A DNA stretch of 63,461 nt, filler included, from Platydemus manokwari (taxonomy: Eukaryota), in the NCBI GenBank assembly GCA_037951405.1. It is 5 parts of 5 records of this genome, joined end to end, with 100 filler letters (N's around TTAATTAATTAA, not from the genome) between each part and the next. Parts side by side here need not be neighbours in the genome. Positions count along the whole stretch, not along the records: positions 15,626 to 32,387 come from JBBMOY011145882.1; 4 more parts are not named here. One strand, given 5' to 3'. Position 1 is the stretch's first letter. Every line of letters starts with the position of its first letter. Shown piece by piece: positions 15,626 to 32,387 of the stretch. The translations under genes and the position numbers were made by a program. The notes beneath the pieces were generated by a model. The model had not been told where the DNA came from, made no database searches, and worked only from the letters and a program-made list of their open reading frames with translations.

Positions 15626-18600
15626 TAATTTATGGGTCACTGCCCCCTAACTTCTTACGCGCCTTGTGTATATTGTTTAATATCAGACCTACTTCCAAAG
15701 CTATAACATTTATTTCGTGAGGTAACAATTAAATAAATATATTAGAGCTGTTTAATTTTTTGTTTCCATGTATTTTCAAATTTAAATTCTCTATTCTATA
15801 AAACCTGTAGAGATACATCTGCTCACAGTTTTTTGGATTTTTTTTCACTGTGAAATTTGAAGAAAATCAAAAGAAATTTTTCCCAAGAATTCGAAGAACT
15901 GTGAGCTCAGCTAGCATCATTGGATCACTTGAGAAAAATTAATTTTTTAGCTCATTATCTTAAAAAGAATTTATATTTCTGATATATAATATAGCTATGT
16001 ATTCGGATATTCAGATATATTTTAAAAATCAATGAAGTATTCACCTTAGCTTGTTTACCAAATTAAATTTGGTGGGATTTTTGTTTGACACAAATTGTTA
16101 TAATTATGTTTTCGACACCTGAGATTATTTTCTATAGTTATGTATACGCACGAAGGATAATATTAAATCAGATAAGTATTAGCTGCAATTTCAACAAGCT
16201 CATTATAAAGAAATTTCTGAAATAAAGGTAAATACGAACTTCTTTGATCGAAATGAAAAGTACAGCTGTAAAAACATCGAGTGGTTGTTATTACACATTC
16301 GCGATTAAATTAATAAAAATATTAGGAAAAACCGAGAAAAAATTGCGGTTTTCGGTTTTATCCTATAAGAAAACCAATAAAATTTATTGGCGGATGTTAA
16401 TTTGTAATTGGATTGATTTCTATTGAAAATCATAGTCACTGGTTTCAAAAATTTTCGAACTCCTACAATTTCTGGTGTCTTAAAAATTTGATCAGTTAAT
16501 TTTTTCCTCAAAATCGGACAACAATATCTTCCGGACAACGCTATGAGATTAGCTGATTAATAATATCTCCAATAATATCAGGAAATTACACAATATTGCA
16601 TCATAGCAGCGTGATCTGCAGACGAAATTTCAGAACACTTAAAATGTGTCTGTATGCGAAGCTTTGTGTGGTTCCTAAATAAGAGGAAAATATTGAATTT
16701 ACTGGGGATTAGATATTCAACTTAAGAGGCACGTGATCGCAATGACTTTCAGTTTAATCATGTTATATATTTAGCCACAAATTACATCTTTCAAGCTATG
16801 GATTTATTAATGTTCACTCGACATATCCGGGATATTTGTCATCTCGTGGTATTTTCGGATTTAATAAAAAACTGGGGAGAAAGATTCCAACAGATTTTTT
16901 CTTCAGAAAATATTTCAAATCCAACTCTACCCATGATCGGCCTATTTCTCAAGCTTAACACTCCGATCTATTACACTCATTTGTTATGTTAAATGGGAAA
17001 TCATTAGGAAATCAATATCAGCTGAATGCAGTTTTCCATGGTGATTAGTTTATAATTGATTGATAATTAATCTCTACATTCAACACTGTTGGTCATTATC
17101 AGTCGATTTGAGAGAAATAAAAATTCGCCACTGAAAATATATTAGATTTGAATTTAATAATATTTTCATTTGAATTTCGTTACACATAAAGAAAAAATAT
17201 GCTGACGCGTACTGATGATGTGTTCGCTGCATTGAATTTAGATCGCCAATACCAAATAACAGTCCACTGGTAGCTAAGTAGCACTGGTTTGCCAGTCGAG
17301 ACATTTTTGAAAAAAAAGGGATTCGAAAATTTTGATTTGAAAAATGTGCCTTATTAGAGCAGAGTTTTTTGTTTTTCAATTTACAATATTTTTCACAATT
17401 TTTGTAGTTTTATTGCCAATTTATGGTGTTGCATGAAATAATCAATTAAGCATGACAGTGTCGATAAATGGGATGTTAAAAAGTTTATCGTAATTTATCC
17501 CTTTAATTTTAATCGAAAATTTTTTATCTTTATATGGGCGATGCAAATTAATCGCTGATAAATGGATTATTTATTCGTTTGTGTGTGTGTGTGTTTTGGA
17601 AAAATAATTAACTGAAATCGATAAATGTTAAATAGATAATAATCAATTGAGGTCAATAAATAATTATTTATTTTAATAATTAACGATAACAATCAATACG
17701 AATGGACATGTTAAGTGCAAACATCATGGCATTGGAAACATTGAAACGTTGATTGTGTATTTTGATGCATAGTGTAACACTCTTGGGAATCAGAACAAAA
17801 TGCCTAAAAGCACGAGTTTCTAGATAAAAATCAGTCAAATCAAATTTGACAGAATATATATGGGGAAATATATTCCAACCATTTTCAATTGTGCCACTCT
17901 ACTTGAGTTCTGCCATTGCAGTCGAATATGTGCCCAGTGCATTTGTAATTCAATTATGGAAAATTTTCCAATGTCTTCCTTGAGTAACAAATCCCGAAGA
18001 GCAGAAGACAACCTCATTCGTAATTCATCACTACAACCAGTTGTCACTGCATCGAACCAGACTTGAGAGGCATGTTTGCCAGATAAAATAGAACTAGAAT
18101 AATTAACTAAAACTCATCTACTCATGACTCATCGTATTGCGTTCTCTTTTTTTTTATCACAGAGAGCTATTTTCTCTCGTTGTAGTCGATTTGGCTCTGC
18201 CAATTGTTTTTCTTATTAATTGATTTGTTGGTCTCGTAGATATATCATTGAAATCGCGATGATTGCACCACAAAAATAATCGGGTATTTTAAGGAAATAT
18301 AATCGATAATTAATTAGATTTTTCCAATGGAATTCTATTATAGAGATCGAAATTCTACGATTTCCCTCGTTATTTTCTATCAGGCCCATATTTGTCATAT
18401 TAAAATTGATGAATTTATGATTTCGCAACTGGCCTGTCAGTCAATATCCCGTTGGACGACTACTTTCACAGTTGTAATTTGATTGTAATTTCATAACGTT
18501 TTTCGTCTTAAAAATAATATGTATGTGTCCTAATGGTTTTCTATATGAGACAATCTCTTACATTTACTTTAATAATCAATAATTTCTAGATCAATTTTTA

Positions 18601-19120
18601 TGATCAATTGATTTTCGATTTGCACAAGCATTATAATTTATATCACGTTCTTGGACATCTTGGATGTGAGTTAGTTTTGGTACACAGTGTTTATCATTGA
18701 TTCGAATCGTCATTGTAATCCATTTTGATGATACATTTTCAAATTGTATTGATCGTTAGTTATAATAGACTTTTTAATGATCTACAAATTTGATCTTTAT
18801 AATAATTAGTGGTTTGTGTTGTTTATTGAAAACGTATGTTATATGGAATGGGGTAGTGTTGATGTAAAACCATAAGTGGTGTCGGTATCGATGCTGTGAG
18901 TGATGATTGCAGGCCTCTGTCAATTATGAAATAATATAGACTATTCAAAGTTAGTGATGGCAAGACTACACTGCAATTGACACTTGCACTATTCATTCTA
19001 ACAACAACACAATGCTGACATCTAATTATTTGTGTTAATTTTTGTAAGTTGCACAGAAATCAATGAAAATTATAGATTAATATTGTTATCACTGCTATGA
19101 ATGAATTTCTTTATTTTCAG

Positions 19121-22100
19121 GCTTCCTCTTTCAGTAGTATGACTGACTCTACAGTATCACTCAATATCATAACGGTTACTCTCAATATGGATACGGTTCC
19201 ATTTTTAGGGATCTCAATAGTGGGGCAGACAAACGGTAGTCAGGAAAATGGTGATGGTGGTATCTATGTTGGATCAATAATGAAGGGTGGAGCTGTTGCT
19301 CTTGATGGAAGAATAGAACCTGGTGATATGATTCTAGAAGTCAATGGAATCAGTTTTGAAAACGTAAGCAATGAGGAAGCCGTCAGAACCTTAAGAGAAC
19401 AAGTTCAGAAACTTGGGTGGGTTTAGATTTGGTTTAAAAATTATTAACAGATTCTGTTTTTCAGACCGGTTACCTTAGTCGTCGCCAAAAGCTGGGATCC
19501 AAACCCTCCTGGGTATATGCTTCCTCAACAAGATCCTGTGCGACCCATAGATCCCAGAGCTTGGGTATTGCACACTCAGGCCATGGGAAACATGGCTCCC
19601 CCAACACAACCTCCTGCAAGCAGTGAACAGTTTCTACAGGGTGGTGGAAAATATCTTCCGTACGCGGGAGCTATGTCCACAGTCGCAAGCACAATAACAA
19701 CTACGAGTTCCAGCCTAAAAAGCAGCTCAGTTGTTGAAGTACAAAATACTCAAAACAAATTTGTTAGCCGGAACGACGAGCCTATTCCTGTACCTTTAAC
19801 ATGTAACCATGAACCGGCAATTATCATCAGGGCCATGGCTCAATCAGATTCTGGGTTACCTATTAGGGACCGTTTATGGCTAAAAATTACCATATACAAT
19901 GCTTTCATTGGTTTGTTAAAGAATTTTTTTGTTATATTTCGATAAAATGATATCGCAGGTTCCGATCTCGTCGATTGGTTATTTTCTCATGTCCAGGGTT
20001 TTGCTGATAGAAAAGATGCCAGGAAATTTGCAACTAATCTCCTAAAAATGGGTTTCATCAGACACACGGTCAATAAATCTAGTTTCTCCGAACAGTGCTA
20101 TTATGTACTGAATGACATGACTAGTGGTAAGTGCTGATGGATTTTTATGATTGGATAATTATTATTAATCGATAATCATTGAATATCCCATTGTGTTCAA
20201 TCTAATTTAATTTTAAATAAAATAATTAGCCTATCGACGGAAAACTTAATCATACGTTAATTAAATAAATACGGTGAACCTCAATATTGATTAGCACATC
20301 GTCGATTAACATAATAATAATAATAATAATAAATATTATTATTGATTATTTTATTAAATAATTTTATCACTGTCATTATGGAAAATATTAAAATATTATC
20401 ATCAATATTCTATGATATAATTATGATTATTATTTTTGCTATAATTTTGATAAATATAATTATTAATACCTCAACTAAATAATTATGAGAAGAGTCATCT
20501 AAAGAATTAATTAAATAACTAATTATAATCTTGTTTTAATGTTACTTGCTGAGCCGATATAGTCTGCAAGATAGCGTAAAACTAGTGATAACGAATATTT
20601 CATCCTATTATCCGAATTTATAAATTTGAAATAAATTTTCATTTCACTGTATCACGAGAAACTCCACAATGATCAGGAATTAAATGCCTTGAAGCAGATG
20701 CATATTTTGATGTAACCAGTTGTTCCCTGTATTGCATATCACCGGTGTTCGGATGCACTGTAAGTCATGGTAGCAATTATAGTATAGGAACTGAAAGAAA
20801 ATAATTGAATTGTATGAAATCACGTTTTCTTGGCAGAAATTGGTAGAATTGAATTAAAAATATACACACACGCGAATGGGGAATGCGTGGACTGTGGTTG
20901 ATAAATAATACTGATCGAACAATATGAGGACTTCTATAGGAGTGTCCCTATATTTCAAGAAATCTATTGCTGGTATCAGAATTGTGGAAGTGTATGATGG
21001 CAACAATGCCAATATTGAAGGGAATTCTGTTGAAATGCGTTGGAACGGATATTTAATGAAACGCTTAATATGTTCTTTCTAAAGATGAGAGATTGATTTG
21101 AATATCATTATTGGATTTTTTTGCTTTTCTCTAATTTATTATTAAAAATAATAATTATAATGATATAATTTATACTATGACTGCTTCCATCAGCGGCTAA
21201 TGGAATTAAATCTCCGAGTCTTCTATTTAATAGTTGGTAATTTAATAAGATTTCTCCATATTTTTCCTTTGTGATCGACTAATATGTTTCATCAATAAAT
21301 CCATCAGGTGAGGAAGAATCATCGTGTAACATCAGCAAATGGATTTTCTCGTTAATTTGTGTCATTAAAATTCAGCAAGAGTTTAAAATTCACGATTTTA
21401 TGCAATAGCGAAATCCCCGGAAACATCAAATTGAGGAATATTCTTCCAGAATTGTTTTAGGATAAATATTGTTTCAATCTGTAAAAGTGTCACGCTCCAT
21501 GTAATCAAAATCCAATCAAAACAACTGTGCACGGTTAAGCGATAGTAAATATGAATGAAATGGCTTCGAAATTGGTTCGACTCCACTAGTTGATGATTTA
21601 TGGAAATTACTGTTACTAATCGATATCGATGAATCGAAAAGTTACCAAAGTGATATGTCGATGGACTGCTTGTTAGAATTGGCAGTGGGTAACTCATTAT
21701 CTATTCAATGCATAGAAATGTTAGGATTAAAAATTTGATCGGTTACCATTAGTGACCAAGAAAGTCATTTAAAAGCAGTTCTGACTAAAATAAAACTGAA
21801 AAATACAAAAATTGATTTGAAAAACTGTCAGATGTTACCGAAAATATTGAATCAGAAATAATTCCAAAAGATTTCGCGCTTACTCACGGAAATTATTTAA
21901 TAGTTTCAGAATCTTTCATCATTAATGATCACTCAAATTATTTGTCCTTTTCCTATGCTATGTTTATTAGATATTCCACAAAACAGCATCACCGATATTT
22001 ATACAAATATGTAAGTTTATTAAAAATTTAATCCACACGACCATCAATTTCGAGCTCTTGTATAAGTCTCACTATTTATAGTTCAGAGTTCGAGTAAATT

Positions 22101-25100
22101 TTACAAAAATGCATTGAGACCCATCAATTAGAGAAATTACGATTTCCGTAACAGCTCGAATATAAGATGAAAGGTGTTTTTGAAACAGAAATATCATCAA
22201 AAAAGTTAAGAGTTGGGAATTTTGTGAGTGATTAGATATTGCAATATATATATTTTTCAGTGGAAAAGTTAGGCTCGCATAAATATTCGGTCTAATCGGG
22301 TATAATTATTACAATTACGGCATAGATCGCAATCTGTTATCTATTAAGGATAATTTTATATACAATTTTTATCTGAATATTTATAACATCGACATGTTTA
22401 AGGAGTACTCCAATCTTGTAATTAAAAATGGGCAAAAATGTAGGGTTTTTTTTAAATAATATTATAATTTTTTGTATTAAATGTCTCGATTAATTTATAA
22501 TTTACCGATTTATAAATGACGTTGAATTAAACTAAAATTGAAAACTGATACATTTTGAGATCTTGGATCACTAATCTTTAACCTTTTGACCTACCTTGTT
22601 TAAACGGACGAAGTCTGTGCTACTATTGATTATATTTTCCTCGTGGGTTGGCAAGTTGAAAGTTTTTATATTTAAATTGAAAGGTCCATAATTCAATTAA
22701 TGTAATCAGTTATATCGTCAGATAAATGAAACCCATGGGTGACACAAAAATCAAAAAAGATTCCCAGAAAACGAATTAATAAGGAGTTTTCTAGTTTATT
22801 ACTATCTGGTTGTCATGGTAATGTAAACAGATATTTGAACGAATGTGGCCGTGTAATATTATGATTACTTATAAATTCGGTATAGATTTAATTTTGAGAT
22901 ATTTCGAAGATTTTGTAACCCAAAAATATGCGATAAGAAATATAAACCAATTCGTCGAAAATTGTTATTATCATCACAAGCCTCAGAACAAGATAATGTC
23001 ACAGTTTTTAAGCAAGGACTGTCTGACATAAGATAAAATGATATTCACATAATATTAGTAACTACAAGTACGGATTCAAGTACATTTAACGTGTTTGTAA
23101 AAATTGTTGTAAAAACTCGAGTGAATGGTGAAAAAATGGCGTGAAAATTTTATTATTAATCGGGTTCCACACAGAATTATCGAATAAAACACGTAAGTTG
23201 TAGAGATTTTTTCGAATTTGTAGTGAAATTTCTGAAGATATTCCAATCATAAATTTGAACTAAAATTATTAGTATATTAGTGATAGTGTTTTGTCTTTTC
23301 TCTTCGATATATTAATTCTAGCTACAAAATATTCCAGTAATTCAAAAATAGTTGTCCTTATTTGAAATCAAGAGATCAGATAACTTGAATTTCGGATTTT
23401 TGTATTCAAAACCAATAGAGAAAGGTCAAAAAATTTAATACTGACTTTGGATTTTTATCCATTTTTCCTTATTCGGATTTTATAATTATTTTAAAATAAT
23501 TTTTTTATTTTTAATCATGTCCAGTAGCATAATATGGTACAAAGGTATGATCACCGACAGTGATCCATATTCATCATATTACCAATCAAAATTTGATTCC
23601 ATAGTATTGTATCGCAAAATTTAAATTCATTTATGAATTTGAAGACACTGGAGTTGTTTTTATTTATTTTTAAGATACGCCCAAACTCCGAGTACTTTCA
23701 TTTTAAATATTTCTATTCTCAGCTCTGTCCGTCCTAAATTTGGAATCTGAGATTGATTCGGTCTCCGTTGTAGCCGGTCAGCAGCAATCCAAACCCCGTC
23801 TGATGCATCAAGAAATGGGTTGTAAAGAGTCACCAATCCTTTCTTCCGGATTTCAATCAGCCTGCAGTAATAAATGGTCCAGTTACAATCCACAGTCAAA
23901 TGTGCCCCCTGAAATGTATTCACAGGCAGGAATATATCCAATAACAAACAAGTACCTTTTATTAGGCCGATGCCTCGTTTCTTAAGCTGGTTTTTTCTCA
24001 TAGCAATTATAAGAACCAGAACTTCTATTCGGCAAATATCCAACCGCAATCTCAGTCTGTAGTAAAACCCCTTGGTCTTTCCAGTAATCTCAAATCCACC
24101 CGAGGTCCGGGATCAGTTAACAGTGGTTCAGGTAGAGATTTAATAATGTTTAATATCCAGATATCGATGTTTTCGCATGAGATTGTCAAAGCTTTGTAGC
24201 TGTGGTGACTGATGTCATTTTCATTTTTTGTGTTGTGTACATCATACTAAAACAAAACCAAGTCCAACAACAACAACAACAATTTAAAAATCATGGATTA
24301 CAGTATGGTAAAGTTTGAATTATCACGGGATTCTTTTATATATTTTTATTTATGGAATCACTTCGACTTTGTCAAAAAACATTTGATCTTGAATAGCCCT
24401 TTTGTATGTGTAGGCCTTTCGTATAGATTTGTTACTAGTTTGCGATTATCTGGTGGTATAAAAATAAACTCGCTAATTCCTTTTTCTATCGTCGTTATTC
24501 TCTTAAATAATGCGAATTTCTTCCCTTTTTGTCTTTTGCAGATTATCTCAGATTTATCAACGAAATATTTAGACTGAATCACTGTAAGGATTTTTATGAT
24601 ACTAAAGTGACTCTTGTCAAACTCCATTGCTGTAATTATAGACGGAAATAGTAGTCGGTGTTTCACCATCATTACCGTACTCATCCTCATCGTAAACTAT
24701 TATTTATGTAAAACATTCTATCATCAATGAAGTCATATTGATGGACCCAATGATATAGATATTTTATAAACTAGTGGTTACTAAAAACTGCGTTTGTCTC
24801 AATTCAATGAGTGTTCTCAAAGCTGTGAAGCATATGTGGGAAGGAACCAACAGACCTGTAATGGCAGCGGATCACAGTGGTAGTGGTGGAGGCGGTTCTA
24901 ATAAGGAGGTAGAGCCCGTCCCAACTGCCTCAAATCGCAATGTAGACGTCAAATCAACTGTCAGTGTGAACTCCACCACATGTGGGTTGTGCGGTGGCGA
25001 GCAGGAAGAATTTGATCTGTATTCACACGAAGAAGATGAGGAGATGCAGCAGAATCGTACAATGAAAATGGAAGCTCCAGCTACAACATCAGGTACCGGT

Positions 25101-25723
25101 CGTTGTGTTAGCTGCAGCGCTAAATGCCTGTTGTCGTGTAATACTAATATTCACACTGTGTGAGTGTGTTTGTATTGATCGTGTTGTCTCCACCACTGCT
25201 ACTAGAGCTGCTTCTACTAACACGACAAGTTAAACACTGTCGTTTAACTATCGCACTGCTTCACTGGTCATTGTATTGTGTCGATATTTGTGTTATATTC
25301 ATTTACCCCATCTATCGAATGCTGATATTAGTATCAGATTTCATGGAATCGTGGAGCAATTAATTTGATCTCATTAATAATTGAAACAATGTTGACACGA
25401 TGTCATCGATTTTAGGTAGTTCTGCAAGTGGTAGTAGCGGTAACGTTCCGCGCAACATCTCAATGCCAGTTTATCATTTACAAAACCAACAAACAGCCGG
25501 TGGTGGAATGGTTCTACCAGATACGTCTCAATATCCTATGCACAATAGTCCACCGCCATCATATCAGCAATCAGTTGCTATTGGAACGATTCTCGGTAAA
25601 AATCAGTCGATGATGGTCGGGGATTCCGGTTCTAATCAATTTTCTTTAAACATCTCTAATGGTATTCAAAATGAAAATAGCTCATCTGGCTTTTTCTCCG
25701 ATGGCCTCGACAAGTGTGATTGA
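19121..25723 (+). CDS. dvl: Dishevelled, 5'-partial (PDZ, DEP, C-terminus; DIX exons not found in this segment)
   Basis: Exons 19121-19416, 19465-19910, 19959-20126, 23723-23951, 24004-24131, 24823-25092 (possible cassette), 25416-25723. Motifs [63 protein letters not shown] (PDZ), [51 protein letters not shown] (DEP). Exons after DEP are less certain. Confidence 0.93.
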
Positions 25724-26192
25724 AGTTCACAATAATCAATAATTATTCTAGTCAAGCAATGTTTTTGAAGTAATTTTTCGTTTTTAAACAAATAATCCAT
25801 TATTTATTCCGATTTGGCGCCATAACACAAACTTGTAGCTGATTGATTTAGATAATTAGTAGGAGGGGATTTTATTTTCACTGGAGTTCATTCTCATTTT
25901 AACAGTCACTGGCTCCTTGGTTTTCTGATTTGGAAAATTATTTGATCGATATATAAAGGAATTCTGAATCCATTTCTTCATCGAGGCATTGCCAAAAATC
26001 GATATTTTTCGTTTTTATTGGCATTGTGAAATCAATGACCATGTTAGAGTTGAAATCAGTGGAACATAATTTATATTTCCTGATATTATTAATCTATCAC
26101 CCGTGATTATTGGATTTGATGTTGATAACTCTTATTAACAGCTGTTAATTCTCATATTATTATTATTATTAATATCTTTATATTTTATTTAG

Positions 26193-26320
26193 ACAGTTCT
26201 GGTCAATTCCATAATCCAGCGGCACCCTTCATCGATCGTGTTGATAAAATATCCGCCTTAATAAAATTATCTGGATGTATAGGTCTGCCATGTGATTTCA
26301 AAAACCAGAGAAATTGTTGA
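26193..26320 (+). CDS. Candidate alternative last coding exon of dvl
   Basis: Acceptor tattttatttag ends at 26192 and is phase-compatible with donor G|gtattc at 25661/25662. Reads DSSGQFHNPAAPFIDRVDKISALIKLSGCIGLPCDFKNQRNC*. Confidence 0.45.
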
Positions 26321-28774
26321 CCAGAACCATCATCAATCCTATCTCACTGTTATTATCATTTTCAAATTTTAATCTTAACCCTAAAAAAATAAACTGTTGC
26401 CTTCAATCAATACAAACACAGTGTATTTCTAATTATAATTTCGATCATCTTGGTTCGTAATCAGATTTTCTCAGTGCGGTGAGTATGGTTGATTCACGAT
26501 ACAGTTGTTATTTTGGTTTCGGTATCAGCATTTGACTGTTAAATTAACGATTGGTATCGATTATTATATTATTACCACCATTATTATTATTATTATATTA
26601 ATATTATTTCTAATCATCATCATAAATTATTATTAATATTATTATTATTGATATTATTATTAATTATATTATTACTCGAGATTTATTGCTCGTGATCGAC
26701 ACATGTAGGTTGTCTTTTAATTTCGGTGAAGTGTAACTGGTTTTCGATCATGGCTGTTGTTGTTTGATTAATTCGATGTTTCAATCAGCATAATATTGAT
26801 TTTTATCTCCAATCTCACTCTGTATGCGTGTGCGTGTGAAACGAAAAACAAAATATATATATACAAACCAATTCTTTGCAATTATTTATCATTTATCTGC
26901 TCCAGTATTGACAAGTTTTTACCGATCCGTTTTACTGGAACTCAGCATGTAGTTGTTCACAATTATGGAATTAACTGTTTTATTATGTTATATACGTGGT
27001 TATTTTGTGTAGATATGAATACAATATTTGACTTTTGCAGTTTTTATTTGCATGTACCAAACTTTATTTAATTTTCGATTTAATTCGTTTATTTATTGAT
27101 TATCGATAATTTTATTTATTGATATTATTTTTCTCGTTGTTGAGGGAGGTACTTGATTTTTTAGAATCGAACTGATAATTTATAACGCTTTGACATTTTA
27201 TTAATCTCAAATTATGCCCATAATTCTTGTTGAACACTTCATCGTCTTCTATCTTTAAAGTGTAAACGAAATCTTAAGCCGTGTTTTTTCTAAAAATTTG
27301 ATTTTGCTGCTGAAAAAGCTTTTCAAGAATTGAGCTAAGGGTAGGGATATTGTGAATTCAGAAACCTTCGTAATCGTTTGAATATTGATTTATTTAATAA
27401 TTTTAATATTGACTTTTATTTCCAATTGAACTGACTTTATAAAATATTGATTTTTAGAAGTTAATCTATGTTCTAAAATAGATTCCATTTACTGATGATT
27501 TTAAGTAATTAGCGAAATTTATTAACGGTTAACAAAAAAATACATTTGTGATATAAAAATCTGAGTACGATCTCCATTAATGAAAATGCGAAACACAGAT
27601 CATTATAGTATACTGATGTCAGATTGGAAAATCATTCTAAACGAATATAAATTCAATTGCAACGCTTAATGAATCACTGTTTCTCTTTTTTAGGAAAAAC
27701 GCCTTCGCTTGATAAAGATTGGTGTATTACTGCAGCAAAACTCAATCAAATATGATCAATATTTAATAATAATTTAATAAATCAATTAATATTATGTTTA
27801 TTGATTCTCGGACAATTATTCCATTATCACTCGAGTTTTATTTAGTATTTTTAATTTTATAAAATGTGAAATAGCTGATGATTAGATAATTAATTGGATC
27901 ATTCGCGAAATGTAATCACATGAAATCACAATCCAATATCATTTTCGAACAAGTGCCTTTTTGATGTCAAATAATAAAAAGGTTGCCGTTTATTTAAATA
28001 AAATATAGCGAGTTACTTTCCATGTCCGAGCAACAATTAAAACCTGGAAACTGGTAATCGGAGCTGGAAAATTTTGTTAAATTTTCTTGCACATTTCTTT
28101 TAGGGTTTTAAATTCAGAATTGTATTTATGCTCCTCAATTCTTTCGTGTCTCTTAGTGTATCTTGTAATGGTAGCTGTTCATGTGTCTGATCTACTATTG
28201 GAATTGTATCTTTTCCTTTGGTACTCGTAAACATTATTTTCTCATCAAATATTTTTTCCTATTATTTTCATCATCAGTAAGACTTTCACGCACCATCTTA
28301 CAAGAAAACGAGCAAATCTCTTTTTTGAATAATCAATAATAAATTTATAAACAGTAAATATATTTTGGCGTTACGTCAATACGATCAATTCTATATTTGA
28401 TTTTTTAAATTTTTAATATTGATTTATTTCAAGTTAAAGATATCGGATTTGAAAATCAATAAATTGTCGAATGTAATTTTATAATATATGTATGCTTGAT
28501 TATATCTAATGAAGAATTCGTGAATTCATTTCTCGTATTTTTAAAGATTTACAAAACCATTGATTTGAATTGGAGTCAGTAACCGATTTTAATCACTGTA
28601 ACTATGGTGATCACTTTAGAATTCATTCTGCAATAATTTACAAGTCAACTATTTTATCGATCTCACTACAATTTATGATCAATAACTTTAAAAAAATTTA
28701 AATTATCTACTATTAGTTGTAAGTAGAAACGATTATCATTGAATTGAAGTTAATGAATATAGAAGAGAAAAATG

Positions 28775-28993
28775 GCTGGATGTGGTGGTGCGCGTCTGTA
28801 ACTCTACTACCTGAGAGCCGGATTTATGAAGTGATGAATACATGGAATGGTATATGATTATATCACACCTTAATCTAACAGAACCAGTTTGAAGAAAAAC
28901 TGTGATCACATATGAATCACAGTGGTTCTTCAGATTGGTTCTGGTGTAGGTTAGGTTATTCATGAGTTCTGTAAATCACAACATAAATCTTTT
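28775..28993 (+). ncRNA. SRP/7SL Alu-domain RNA A (about 219 nt) with a long hairpin in place of the S domain
   Basis: 5' GCTGGATGTGGTGGTGCGCGTCTGTAACTCTACTACCTGAG matches the SRP RNA 5' Alu fold (helix 3, UGUAA, helix 4 CUC/GAG, loop-loop GGUGGU/ACUACC). GATTTATG..GTGAT pairs with 3' ATCAC..CATAAATC, directly followed by TTTT (28990-28993). Confidence 0.75.
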
Positions 28994-29047
28994 CATTTTA
29001 TTAATTCTAAAAGCGCTTAAATTGAATATTGATAACTTCTTAGAAAT

Positions 29048-31930
29048 TATATGAAAAAGGATATTGATTGACTGAGAACACTTGCATGTAAACACCAAAT
29101 GTTATTTATAAAATTCTTAAGAAAATATAAATTAACTTGTAGTTCATTATTTTTGTTCAATGAAACTAGCAAGATTGCTTCAATGACCGTCATCATTTCA
29201 AAATTGTAGGATCTCTATTCTTGTCATCACAGCTTCAGATGATCATTAAAGTTACTTGTCTCTCGGAAGGCGTTAAATTTTGAAAATATATATTTCTCTC
29301 CAGAAATACTTTTACAATCACTGTTAATGTTTTGCACACAAATAATATCGAAATGTGAATTTATTTTTTCATTAAAATATGTGAGAAGAATTGATAAAAA
29401 ATCAATAAAAATTCGAACAATCTGGGATTCGAACCACTACTGTCGGAGAATGATATGAAAGTGTTGTGATATTTTAATAATTGTTCATTTTATTCAAACA
29501 AAAAATTAATTGCTCTTATATAAAGATGTTGAAATTTATTTTAAAGTTCTGAAGAAAGACGGAGTTCTATTACAACAATTTGGAAGCATAAATTACCTTG
29601 AGAAACTGAGCAGTAACTTAAGCATTAAAACAATCGTTAAACATTTATTTTGGGAAACATAAGCCCACAGGCTCAAGGAACATCCGTAAAGCAAAATTTT
29701 CAAAAATTTTCAACCAAATTTACGTGAATTAGTTTACTTATACATCAGCCCCACATACTTGATAAATGATGTTGAAAAATTTCAAAACATAAAATCGATT
29801 ATCATGATTTTTTACTTTGTAAATCACATGATAAATTTTATTTAGAAAGAGACAAACAATGCATTACAGATAATTTCAAGAATTTATTGCGTGGTGATAG
29901 AGAAGGGAACAAATAAAACCGGATGATATTGATGATTATTTTAAAATATTAGATAAAGCATATTAATAGAACTGAACATTTCTATAATGAACTGCATAAT
30001 TATATTTATGTGTTAGATCACAGATTAATAACTAAGATAAATGAATCTTTTCTTTCGATAACATTTCGACAACCGATGTTATATATATATATATATAGGT
30101 TGTTGCTCATAAACTTTCTAACAGTACTGTTTCTATGTAAGACGATTTTTTAAATTAATGATATTACAACTGAAATAAATGATTAGAATCGTAAATAATG
30201 CGTATCAGGTGACTGTGATCTTTGTTATAGATTAAACTAAGATTTCGGGTTGACTATCTGTTATAATTCTTTCTAGATTTTGAAAATATGAATCTCGATC
30301 AGAAATTGTTTGACAATCATTTTTTAGGGTTTGTAAAGAAATAATATCGAAAATGACAACGATTTGATCACAGAAATTCGTGAAAGGAATTGTTAGGAAA
30401 TTCATTAAAAAATGTGATTAGTTGGGATTCGAACCTGTGCCGTAAGATAATATTAATAAATAATAGAGTGACAATGTGATTAAAAATCACTTCTATTTTT
30501 GTCTACAATTTTATTTTCTACAAGCGCTATAACTGGCATTACTTCGATTTTAAAATGTGATAAACATTTAGACATAAAGTAAAATTATAAATTGTCTCTC
30601 AATTTGTAAATAAATATTTATTAATAAGTATAAAAATATCAAACAGAATGTTTAAAGAGAATTATAAACAGTTTCGATTAACTATTTTATAATGATATTC
30701 CCATGAAATGAGCTCACTTTTACAGTTGAGAGATTGTTTTAAATTATTTAATAAGTGCATCTTTTCAAATTTATAATAATAATAACAATAACAATAACAA
30801 AAATTTTGTTAATATAAAAGATTTCAAAAATACCTCAATTTGTTCATTTTGTCAATGCAATGAACTATTATTAAAATATCACAACACTTTCATTTCAATG
30901 TCAAGCGGTGGTTCGAATCCCGGACTGCACACATTTTAATGATTTTCCAACCATTCTTCTCACATATTTTTATTACAAAATAAATTTTATATTTTGACAT
31001 TATTTGCTTACAAATCTTCATCATTAATTGTAAAAGTATTTCTGCTGGCAAGTATTTATTTCCAAAAGTTTTAGGATTCGTTAGAGATAAGTAACTGGAC
31101 TAGACGTCTGAAGTTGTGATGACAAGAATAGAGAACTGATATACACTAATTTAAATATAATTCAAGATGTTTAAAATACGAACCGGTTTCTCTTAAATGA
31201 ATGAATAAACTCATGTTAAGGGATTGAGTGGATTGAGCATATATTCTTTAATGAGTCTTTAATATTGGATGTTGATGCTCATTGAAGTAATCTAGCTATC
31301 TTCATCGAAAAAGAATAATGTGCTCTTGAAAATTCAGAATTACTCAAGAATTTTACAAATAATATTTTGTCGCTAGCTGAAAATACTCTTTATGAACCAA
31401 TGTGTATTATTTTTCATATTTTATGGCTAAACTCAAGACTTTCGGCAAATCGACTCTTTTCAGTACATATACTTTTACAATTCTTTAATAATAGTTTTAC
31501 AATATCGAAATTCAAAATTATTTTATTATAAAAATATATTGGAAAATTATCGAAAAAGTGTGCAACCTGGGATCTGAACCACTACCTGAGAATGATATGA
31601 AAGTGTTGTGATATTTTAATAATTGTTCATTGTACTGATAAAATGGACCAAATGAAATACTTTTCAAATCTTACGGCACAGGTTCGAATCCCAACTACTC
31701 ACATTTTTAATTAATTTCCTAACAATTCCTTTAACGATTTTCTGTGATCAAATCACAGTCAATTTCGACATTATTTCTTTACAAAAAGTTAAGAATGACT
31801 GTCAAACAATCATAGTTATTCATTTCAATTATAACGTTATTAATTTAAAATAAGGTCCTACATAAAAAAGTGCTATAAGAAGAATTATGAGCAATAACTT
31901 ATATATAACATCGGTTGTCGAAATATTTGG
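29048..31930. repeat. Cluster of five related B-box-containing repeats in mixed orientation
   Basis: 29048-29490 is an inverted copy of 30850-31420; 30060-30450 is an inverted copy of 31660-31930; a partial copy lies at 31480-31650. GGTTCGAATCCC at 29424-29435(-), 30424-30435(-), 30910-30921(+), 31681-31692(+), degenerate at 31569-31580(-). Confidence 0.8.
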
Positions 31931-32067
31931 TTTGCTACTTGGTTTATTATACAAGTGACTGTATATTCATCAAGGCAAACATCTTCGCAGAACCTAAGAA
32001 ACTACTTCTGATTAACAGTTAAGCTTTTATAAATTTAAATTCTTTTCGATTTGGAAATAATTTATTC

Positions 32068-32352
32068 AAAAGATTTGTGTCGATTTGAATTGACGGATAT
32101 CCGCTTGGAAGTTTATCAGAGTAGTTTTTATTTATTAACGGTTTGTTTTTACTTTCTCGGCTTACTTGAATTTGCCGACTTAACAAGTGACACCAAAGTA
32201 TTATTCTTAATGGTTTTGTTAATTGTTTTTCTACTCAACTCCAAGTTAAACATCATGGTGAATATGATTTGACAATATATCACCCACCATTCAAACTTCA
32301 CAAATCCAGTTCTCAGGTAGTTGAGTTACAGACGCGCACCACCACGCCCAGC
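32068..32352 (-). ncRNA. SRP/7SL Alu-domain RNA B (about 285 nt) with a non-SRP structured interior
   Basis: Minus strand starts GCTGGGCGTGGTGGTGCGCGTCTGTAACTCAACTACCTGAG. GATTTGTG..TTTGAAT pairs with ATTCAAA..CACAAATC, then TTTT. Interior stems CTTGGA/TCCAAG, GAGTAG/CTACTC, ATTAAC/GTTAAT, ACTTT/AAAGT. No helix-8 SRP54 motif seen. Confidence 0.75.
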
Positions 32353-32387
32353 TGATTTTTATTTTGCAATTTATTAATTTCAGTTAA

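Follow-up and report, generated by a model that had tools for sequence, protein, structure and literature searches.

Two convergent 7SL-derived loci with an SRP Alu domain and no S domain in the flatworm Platydemus manokwari: candidate gene-like paralogues of SRP RNA

Can the Alu domain of SRP RNA (signal recognition particle RNA, 7SL) occur in a flatworm genome as part of RNAs that lack the S domain, and would such loci be genes, dying duplicates or repeats? The question is raised by a pair of neighbouring, convergent loci in the AT-rich genome of Platydemus manokwari (GCA_037951405.1). They were found in a window of 63,461 nucleotides, i.e. the whole stretch of DNA that was analysed, made of five parts of five records joined by filler, and both lie on the part derived from JBBMOY011145882.1. 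RNA A occupies positions 28775-28993 on the plus strand (219 nt including its TTTT) and RNA B positions 32352-32068 on the minus strand (285 nt including its TTTT); both are 7SL-like, have no recognizable S domain and are matched by the Rfam Metazoa_SRP model (RF00017). A preliminary description had placed the pair at these coordinates and strands and had described a nearly identical 5' end, and both statements hold. The 21-mer of positions 28784-28804 has an exact second copy on the minus strand, at 32323-32343, where 0 matches are expected by chance, and in a pairwise alignment 52 of the first 57 nucleotides of the RNAs are identical (five differences), including 25/29 in the stretch from nt 29 to nt 57. 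Besides the shared 5' end, the 3' ends of A and B are also alike.

The 5' part of both RNAs can be read as the Alu domain. In A (nt 1-45, 28775-28819, plus strand) the alignment to RF00017 and the predicted fold recover helix 2 (GCU/AGC), helix 3, the UGUAA U-turn, helix 4 and the GGUGG/CUAC loops, and in B (nt 1-45, 32308-32352, minus strand) they recover the corresponding domain with one C-A mismatch in helix 2 (C2/A43). The Alu-domain hallmarks that had been claimed from the sequence are thus borne out, with helices 2, 3 and 4, the UGUAA and the GGUGG and CUAC loops all aligned at high posterior probability in both RNAs, and the differences between A and B in helix 3 preserve pairing by means of wobble. 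The fold bound by SRP9/14 requires a U-turn triad, formed by the G4-U23 pair and G24, together with complementary loop bases (PMC12265939). Both A and B have G4, U23, G24, G13 and G14 as well as CUAC in the loop of helix 4, and the presence of these sequence requirements supports an intact Alu domain. In the comparison with Metazoa_SRP, for which matches at the 5' and 3' ends had been expected, A was aligned globally (1-299; 54.3 bits, E 3.8e-13) and B was matched at its Alu 5' domain alone (35.1 bits, E 1.3e-07). Both scores lie under the gathering threshold of this model (70 bits), so that neither RNA is a match at gathering.

In both RNAs the segment that follows the Alu domain is predicted to pair with the last nucleotides ahead of the TTTT at the 3' end, as had been proposed, forming 9 bp in each of the minimum free energy (MFE) folds in the manner of helix 5. 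In A, nt 46-54 (GGAUUUAUG, 28820-28828, plus strand) pair with nt 208-216 (28982-28990), with GUGAU opposite AUCAC; the 3' strand, CAUAAAUC(U), leads into the TTTT terminator at 28990-28993, the two together spanning 28982-28993. In B, nt 46-54 (GGAUUUGUG, 32299-32307, minus strand) pair with nt 274-282 (32071-32079), with UUUGA opposite UCAAA, and the 3' strand, CACAAAUC(U), leads into the terminator at 32071-32068 (32068-32079 in all). The compensatory changes claimed for this stem come down to one two-sided pair, A-U52 in A versus G-C52 in B, the covariation in these two members consisting of this compensatory pair and two wobble changes. Inside A or B no T4 run occurs (0 in either), a property shared by 9% of same-length background windows for A and by 5% for B; B has four runs of A4 or longer yet no internal T4.

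Between the strands of helix 5 the two RNAs differ. The contention that the interiors are unrelated holds statistically, with 65 of 500 shuffles reaching the A-versus-B interior score, and constraint thus appears, from these alignments, to be confined to the Alu domain, the ends being alike and the interiors not significantly so. Interior GC content is 34% in A and 32% in B versus 27% locally. A side hairpin follows the proximal helix 5 at the same place in the predicted folds of both RNAs (A, nt 74-91, 28848-28865; B, nt 63-98, 32255-32290). As candidate homologues of helix 6 these side hairpins were rejected, since the homology is not significant and the alignment of a Schmidtea 7SL northern probe with B, though suggestive, does not rise above background (38/500 shuffles and 9% of genomic windows reach its score). 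Distal to the side hairpin, A forms a long apical hairpin (nt 93-182, 28867-28956), and B a distal rod in which nt 99-122 pair with nt 229-257 (32096-32254; z -3.4, mononucleotide shuffle); at the tip of this rod are a pair of hairpins, nt 131-173 and nt 175-196, and a single strand rich in A. The earlier statement that each interior is structured stands for A, with an MFE of the whole RNA of -81.7 kcal/mol (z -7.3) and a bias to the sense strand: -70.1 kcal/mol with 7 G-U pairs versus -53.9 kcal/mol with 2 for the antisense fold, and -47.2 with 4 versus -34.1 with 1 for the apical hairpin. It is weak for B, whose whole-RNA MFE is -66.4 kcal/mol (z -2.6), whose interior has a z of about -2 to -3 and whose sense and antisense folds, at -53.6 and -52.8 kcal/mol, display no strand bias in energy. 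The 3' arm of the apical hairpin of A carries AAUCACAGUGG with the seed of the miR-2 family. Although this AUCACAG seed is present, the scores of the hairpin against mir-2944 (26.4 bits, E 0.0028; gathering 56) and mir-6 (25.7 bits, E 0.021; gathering 58) are far under gathering, and a literature search on the miRNA-like arm found nothing relevant.

The similarity of A and B extends upstream of their starts, in keeping with the preliminary description: 21 of 35 flanking positions are identical, including a TGAAnTTAATnAAT block (binomial p ~0.002 at a match probability of 0.35). The flank of A (28740-28774, plus strand) is AT-rich, has a TATA-like TTAATGAATATA some 17-28 nt ahead of the start, and may function as an upstream Pol III promoter element; that of B (32353-32387, minus strand) is truncated at 32387, where the piece ends. 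Also in line with what had been described, neither a poly(A) tail nor a target duplication above chance is seen at A or B. Their flanks share 7- to 8-mers, none of which abuts the ends of the RNAs, and 62% of shuffles share a 7-mer; for B, with its truncated flank, the test has limited reach. Repeat-rich sequence with many local duplications surrounds the loci, and the spacer between them contains five copies of a box-B-like repeat and no tRNA genes detectable by ARAGORN or Rfam. The other 13 kb of the piece hold no further copy resembling A or B, leaving two copies only. No matches were found for a 35-mer and a 26-mer in metagenome scans, or for the same 26-mer in collections of genome contigs and viral contigs, and exact look-ups of the ORFs of the window found nothing. 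The neighbouring gene encodes Dishevelled (PDZ+DEP). A search with an exon of this gene gave a 37% cestode match, and its last exon found no homologue. For the exon at 19517-19942, a fragment with 93% identity is carried by a Logan contig of SRR33002330 that measures 1751 nt. This contig is collinear genomic DNA with 79% nucleotide identity, indicating that it comes from a related species, and it ends short of A and B.

With regard to the S domain, the earlier assertion that helix 6 and helix 8 motifs are missing was upheld by the RF00017 alignments and a motif scan. In the alignment of A, 11 nt take the place of 97 model positions that correspond to helices 6 and 8; AGCA is absent from both RNAs, and two incidental GNAR tetraloop hairpins in A both lie outside the MFE fold. 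The lack of these motifs implies that neither RNA has a site for SRP19 or SRP54. Thus, by sequence and predicted fold, A and B are real 7SL-derived loci without an S domain and are not canonical SRP RNA. That B, which at 285 nt is near the canonical length, might be the real, highly divergent SRP RNA of this organism is a very improbable alternative. Its length and its topology, a rod ending in two hairpins, would fit, as would the fast evolution of flatworm ncRNAs. Against these points, B contains no GNAR tetraloop hairpin and yields no second SRP or S-domain match at E up to 10, its match to the Schmidtea probe is not significant, and the published Schmidtea 7SL, which shares 62% identity with the human RNA, retains the GGAG of helix 6 and has a helix 8 that begins as in human. 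A planarian is known to possess SRP9, SRP54 and a canonical 7SL in which the sequence of helix 6/8 is normal. B was hence rejected as canonical SRP RNA on account of its missing S-domain motifs and matches; the published planarian 7SL probe sequence is itself absent from the window. It is still harder to credit a 3.6-kb DNA transposon of which the shared ends would be the terminal inverted repeats, their likeness to 7SL being incidental. An inverted repeat of 91 nt with 79% complementarity does join 28742-28832 to 32295-32385, and the region between is full of repeats; however, both by sequence and by structure the arms fit the covariance model of SRP RNA, each leads into an RNA of its own which folds back to pair with the arm and ends in T4, and no transposase ORF lies between them.

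More weight has to be given to readings that accept the 7SL descent. A and B could be dead or dying 7SL duplicates whose S domains decayed or were replaced by insertions and whose transcription, if any, is residual and functionless, a possibility to be taken seriously though on balance rather unlikely. The likeness of the 5' ends would then stem from gene conversion with active 7SL genes or from recent duplication; independently of that reading, gene conversion from canonical 7SL genes, in place of selection on A and B, could account for the 5' uniformity. The sub-threshold Rfam scores and the wealth of local duplications in the region fit such an origin, as do the helix 2 mismatch of B and its weakly structured, AT-rich interior lacking a strand bias, which resemble a decaying copy and are counted against the gene reading. 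There is a precedent in Schistosoma mansoni, with 8-12 SRP RNA candidates of which some are mutated and one is near-canonical (PMC2770079). Neutral decay, however, should strike all parts equally, whereas the Alu domain, together with the closing strand at the 3' end, is 91% identical and the interiors cannot be aligned. Decay is likewise at odds with the compensatory change in helix 5, the lack of internal T4 runs in AT-rich sequence, the 90-nt rod of A with G-U pairs on the sense strand only, and a matching change at the 3' end that is beyond the reach of gene conversion. Distinctly less probable is that A and B belong to SINE families with a 7SL head, be it as members or as master copies, with the head serving as Pol III promoter and the different bodies marking different families. 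This remains a live rival because a Dugesia genome preprint labels expanded repeats as SINE/7SL and SINE/Alu, classes said to be absent from Schmidtea (bioRxiv 10.64898/2025.12.11.693146). The occurrence of two copies within 3.6 kb, the repeat-rich spacer with its box-B-like copies and the loss of the S domain as in Alu and B1 also point in this direction. A SINE origin is opposed by the want of an A-rich or simple-repeat tail and of target duplications above chance, by terminators that directly abut a 3' end pairing back to the head, by similar upstream flanks, not expected of retroposed copies, by the unrelated interiors and by the lack of further copies in the rest of the piece. Antisense ORFs across the interiors, used as paralogue probes, found no relatives in protein collections, a blank that is weak evidence.

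The T4 after the closing stem, the freedom from internal T4, from an A tail and from duplications, and the similar flanks together suggest that A and B are gene-like rather than retroposed. There appears to be an about even chance that they are gene-like convergent paralogues of SRP (7SL) RNA which have preserved the whole of the Alu domain while losing the S domain, and most likely they are candidate Pol III genes yielding Alu-domain RNPs. The preliminary reading as functional 7SL-derived RNAs is thereby sustained as regards 7SL descent, the Alu-domain features including the closing helix 5, the missing S-domain motifs and the appearance of Pol III units, with the function being putative. The anatomy of both RNAs comes from their sequence, and we infer every step of the following working. 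RNA polymerase III would start at the G of GCUGG and stop at the first T4, driven by an internal 5' element of the 7SL type and by the upstream AT-rich, TATA-like element, to give products of ~215 nt (A) and ~281 nt (B). In each RNA, helices 2-4, the U-turn and loop-loop contacts would make up the Alu 5' pseudoknot, clamped by the 5'/3' stem of helix 5, and a long rod would substitute for helices 6 and 8. Such an RNA would be expected to bind SRP9/14, but not SRP19, SRP54, SRP68 or SRP72, and the resulting Alu-type RNP, akin to those of BC200 and scAlu, could titrate SRP9/14 or reach the elongation-factor site of the ribosome. A broader proposal is more doubtful and is offered as an unlikely, speculative one: a small, independently evolved family of flatworm Pol III RNAs, in which the SRP Alu domain (a handle for SRP9/14 and for docking at the ribosomal factor site) would act as a scaffold for exchangeable structured modules. 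Such a family would parallel the BC200 and scAlu RNPs outside the mammals and without being a SINE, and the hairpin of A with the miR-2-family seed might perhaps be diced into a small RNA.

If A and B are gene-like paralogues, the Alu domain would have been recruited at least twice to serve as a module on its own, and they would offer an invertebrate system for the roles of Alu RNPs outside SRP, which is tractable in that RNAi of planarian SRP9 has a phenotype (PMC12579931). Much of the planarian 7SL signal lies in high-molecular-weight fractions outside SRP (PMC12579931), and probes or qPCR directed at the 7SL 5' end would also pick up RNAs like A and B. Should they be pseudogenes or SINE heads, the finding would be a useful annotation note only.

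Among the flatworm relatives, the Dugesia SINE/7SL repeats are planarian sequences recognized as 7SL-like by repeat software and may be of the same kind as A and B; the class is an automatic label that comes without sequence, structure, termini or transcription. The S. mansoni candidates resemble A and B in that a flatworm genome holds several 7SL-like loci, but are described as full-length with point mutations rather than as devoid of the S domain. The view that such RNAs had not been described in flatworms therefore needs qualification: neither the Dugesia preprint nor the S. mansoni paper has S-domain-less RNAs like A and B, but SINE/7SL and SINE/Alu classes have been reported in planarians.

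With the canonical metazoan SRP RNA (RF00017), A and B share helices 2-4, the UGUAA U-turn and the GGUGG/CUAC loops, the closing of helix 5 by pairing of the 5' end with the 3' end, a T-run terminator and, probably, a Pol III promoter with upstream and internal parts; they differ from it in lacking the motifs of helix 6 (GGAG) and helix 8 (GNAR, AGCA), and A has just 219 nt. Primates, rodents and tree shrews are known to have RNAs that retain only the Alu domain of 7SL, and there these gave rise to Alu, B1 and regulatory RNAs such as BC200; to our knowledge, 7SL derivatives of the mammalian Alu, B1 and BC200 type are known from Supraprimates only. Like A and B, the mammalian Alu/scAlu, B1, BC200 and 4.5SH descend from 7SL by loss of the S domain and retain the Alu 5' pseudoknot, including the U-turn triad on which SRP9/14 depends. 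They are transcribed by Pol III, with BC200 also requiring upstream elements, and A and B are candidate Pol III units. Unlike in A and B, a central deletion joined the two Alu halves of the mammalian derivatives, and these have A-rich tails, retropose via LINE-1 and reach huge copy numbers. A and B, on the other hand, are free of insertion hallmarks and combine a long insert between the strands of helix 5 with similar upstream flanks and terminators of their own.

At the Rfam gathering thresholds no family is called anywhere in the part 15626-32387. Under E-value reporting, used for matches below gathering, Metazoa_SRP is the top family for both candidate 7SL-like RNA genes, A (28775-28993, + strand) and B (32352-32068, - strand), which are arranged tail to tail. 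The alignment of A (54.3 bits, E 3.8e-13) spans the model from end to end, with 11 nt standing in place of the 97 model positions of helices 6 and 8, and that of B (35.1 bits, E 1.3e-07) covers the Alu 5' domain alone. Both loci possess a complete Alu 5' domain with the hallmarks originally proposed, namely helices 2-4, UGUAA, the G4-U23/G24 triad, G13, G14 and the helix 4 loop CUAC; the triad, G13/G14 and loop features are among the requirements of the SRP9/14-binding pseudoknot named in recent work (PMC12265939). The reported lack of helix 6/8 motifs likewise stands: AGCA occurs in neither RNA, a search of B for a GNAR tetraloop hairpin found none, and the two incidental GNAR tetraloop hairpins of A are incompatible with its fold. 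Together, the intact Alu features, the Rfam results and the absent S-domain motifs indicate that A and B are, as judged from sequence, 7SL-derived, with the Alu domain intact and the S domain absent, and neither is a member of the canonical SRP RNA family.

The near-identity of the 5' ends is borne out by an exactly shared 21-mer (chance expectation 0 matches) and by only five differing positions over RNA nt 1-57, with 25/29 identities over nt 29-57; the final 17 nt agree at 13. In the minimum free energy (MFE) folds of both RNAs nt 46-54 pair, as had been claimed, with the last nine nt, just ahead of the T run or reaching into it; next come an AA bulge and the second short stem previously pointed out, GUGAU/AUCAC in A and UUUGA/UCAAA in B. 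The proposed compensation in the closing helix is seen at position 52, where an A-U pair in A corresponds to a G-C pair in B. The helix 3 differences A6/G6 and U7/C7 both retain pairing via wobble; helix 2 of B has a single break (C2/A43). Conservation is restricted to exactly the predicted Alu-domain parts, backed by one compensatory pair.

The interiors (GC 34% in A and 32% in B, against 27% in the surroundings) show no significant similarity, in line with the initial description, their score being reached by 65/500 shuffles, yet in both a hairpin immediately follows the proximal helix 5. That each interior is structured holds well for A and poorly for B. In the fold of A (MFE -81.7 kcal/mol, z -7.3), a small side hairpin and a rod of 90 nt accompany the Alu domain and helix 5. 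The region of the rod favours the sense strand by 16 kcal/mol (-70.1 versus -53.9 kcal/mol antisense), with 7 versus 2 G-U pairs, a bias that would fit pairing preserved in the RNA of the strand predicted to be transcribed. The fold of B is weaker (z -2.6) and shows no energy bias between strands, with 9 sense versus 3 antisense G-U pairs; two hairpins and a strand rich in A form the end of its rod, which is S-domain-like by topology only. The apical hairpin of A (28879-28943, + strand) gave weak matches to mir-2944 (26.4 bits, E 0.0028) and mir-6 (25.7 bits, E 0.021), both far under gathering. Its 3' arm starts with AAUCACAGUGG, which contains the miR-2-family seed AUCACAG, and a literature search for this arm returned no match.

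Both loci follow, about 3 kb downstream, the final long reading frame (25385-25720) of a Dishevelled-type gene region (19097-25720, + strand) in the left portion of this AT-rich part (per-kb GC 26-41%). This region includes a PDZ exon (19097-19423), a further exon (19517-19942) and an exon encoding the latter half of the DEP domain (19946-20134), all on the + strand. The long, poorly conserved frames up to 25720 may be its C-terminal exons; homologue and Pfam searches with 25385-25720 gave no match. One exon has a cestode protein (37% identity) as its closest named relative, and a 93% identical exon fragment is found on a 1.75 kb Logan contig of SRR33002330, which is genomic DNA collinear with the region at 79% nucleotide identity and thus belongs to a related species. 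Scans of metagenome, genome-contig and viral-contig collections with short probes from the two loci gave no matches. The spacer between A and B (29200-31930) contains five copies of a local repeat of 150-320 nt in both orientations (29200-29520, -; 30290-30455, -; 30810-31140, +; 31495-31680, -; 31660-31815, +). Its top-conserved block, GGTTCGAATCCC, resembles the T-arm of a tRNA or a Pol III box B and is followed after 10-14 nt by a T4-5 run; ARAGORN and Rfam made no tRNA calls on it, and it may represent a tRNA-derived SINE or MITE-like family. A further inverted pair (30060-30192/31806-31927) extends two of the copies. Next to a 28-nt inverted repeat, 96% complementary (30060-30087/31900-31927), there is a short stretch of (TA)n, at about 30077-30099.

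Schmidtea mediterranea possesses a predicted 7SL with 62% identity to human and conserved structure, together with SRP54 and SRP9 (PMC12579931). The northern probe for this RNA, read as sense RNA, contains helix 6 with a GGAG loop and a helix 8 whose start resembles the human one. The probe is absent from the window and not significantly similar to the interior of A or B. Given this canonical planarian 7SL, B is not simply the flatworm version of SRP RNA; and as it further lacks AGCA, a GNAR tetraloop hairpin and any second SRP match up to E 10, its being a divergent canonical SRP RNA is very improbable. That the shared ends are terminal repeats of a transposon is scarcely credible.

A SINE-type explanation is retained, since a Dugesia genome preprint lists SINE/7SL and SINE/Alu repeat classes, said to be absent from Schmidtea, and Schistosoma mansoni has 8-12 SRP RNA candidates, some mutated, so that multi-copy 7SL-like sequences in flatworms are not unheard of. 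Nevertheless, A and B are unlikely to be heads or masters of SINEs. As initially reported, neither has an A-rich tail or a target duplication, their flanks sharing only 7- to 8-mers, none abutting the ends, a level equalled by 62% of shuffled flanks. The similarity noted between their upstream flanks also holds (21/35 identical over the 35 nt that could be aligned, including a TGAAnTTAATnAAT block; binomial p ~0.002), and argues against retroposition, as retroposed copies should not share them. ORF-based probes recovered no hidden paralogues of the interiors, which counts only weakly against SINEs. Somewhat less doubtful, though still the lesser possibility, is that both are decaying 7SL duplicates. 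In both loci TTTT stands immediately 3' of the closing stem and no internal T4 run is present; background windows without T4 amount to 9% at the length of A and 5% at that of B, which has four A4+ runs.

The Alu-confined conservation, compensatory pair, own terminators, T4 avoidance, upstream flanks and sense bias of A thus point, with about an even chance, to two Pol III genes making Alu-domain RNPs. Their claimed novelty in flatworms is upheld insofar as the literature searched contained no account of 7SL-like RNAs lacking an S domain there, and is qualified by the Dugesia and S. mansoni precedents. By analogy with BC200 and scAlu, such RNPs might function in SRP9/14 titration or translational control.
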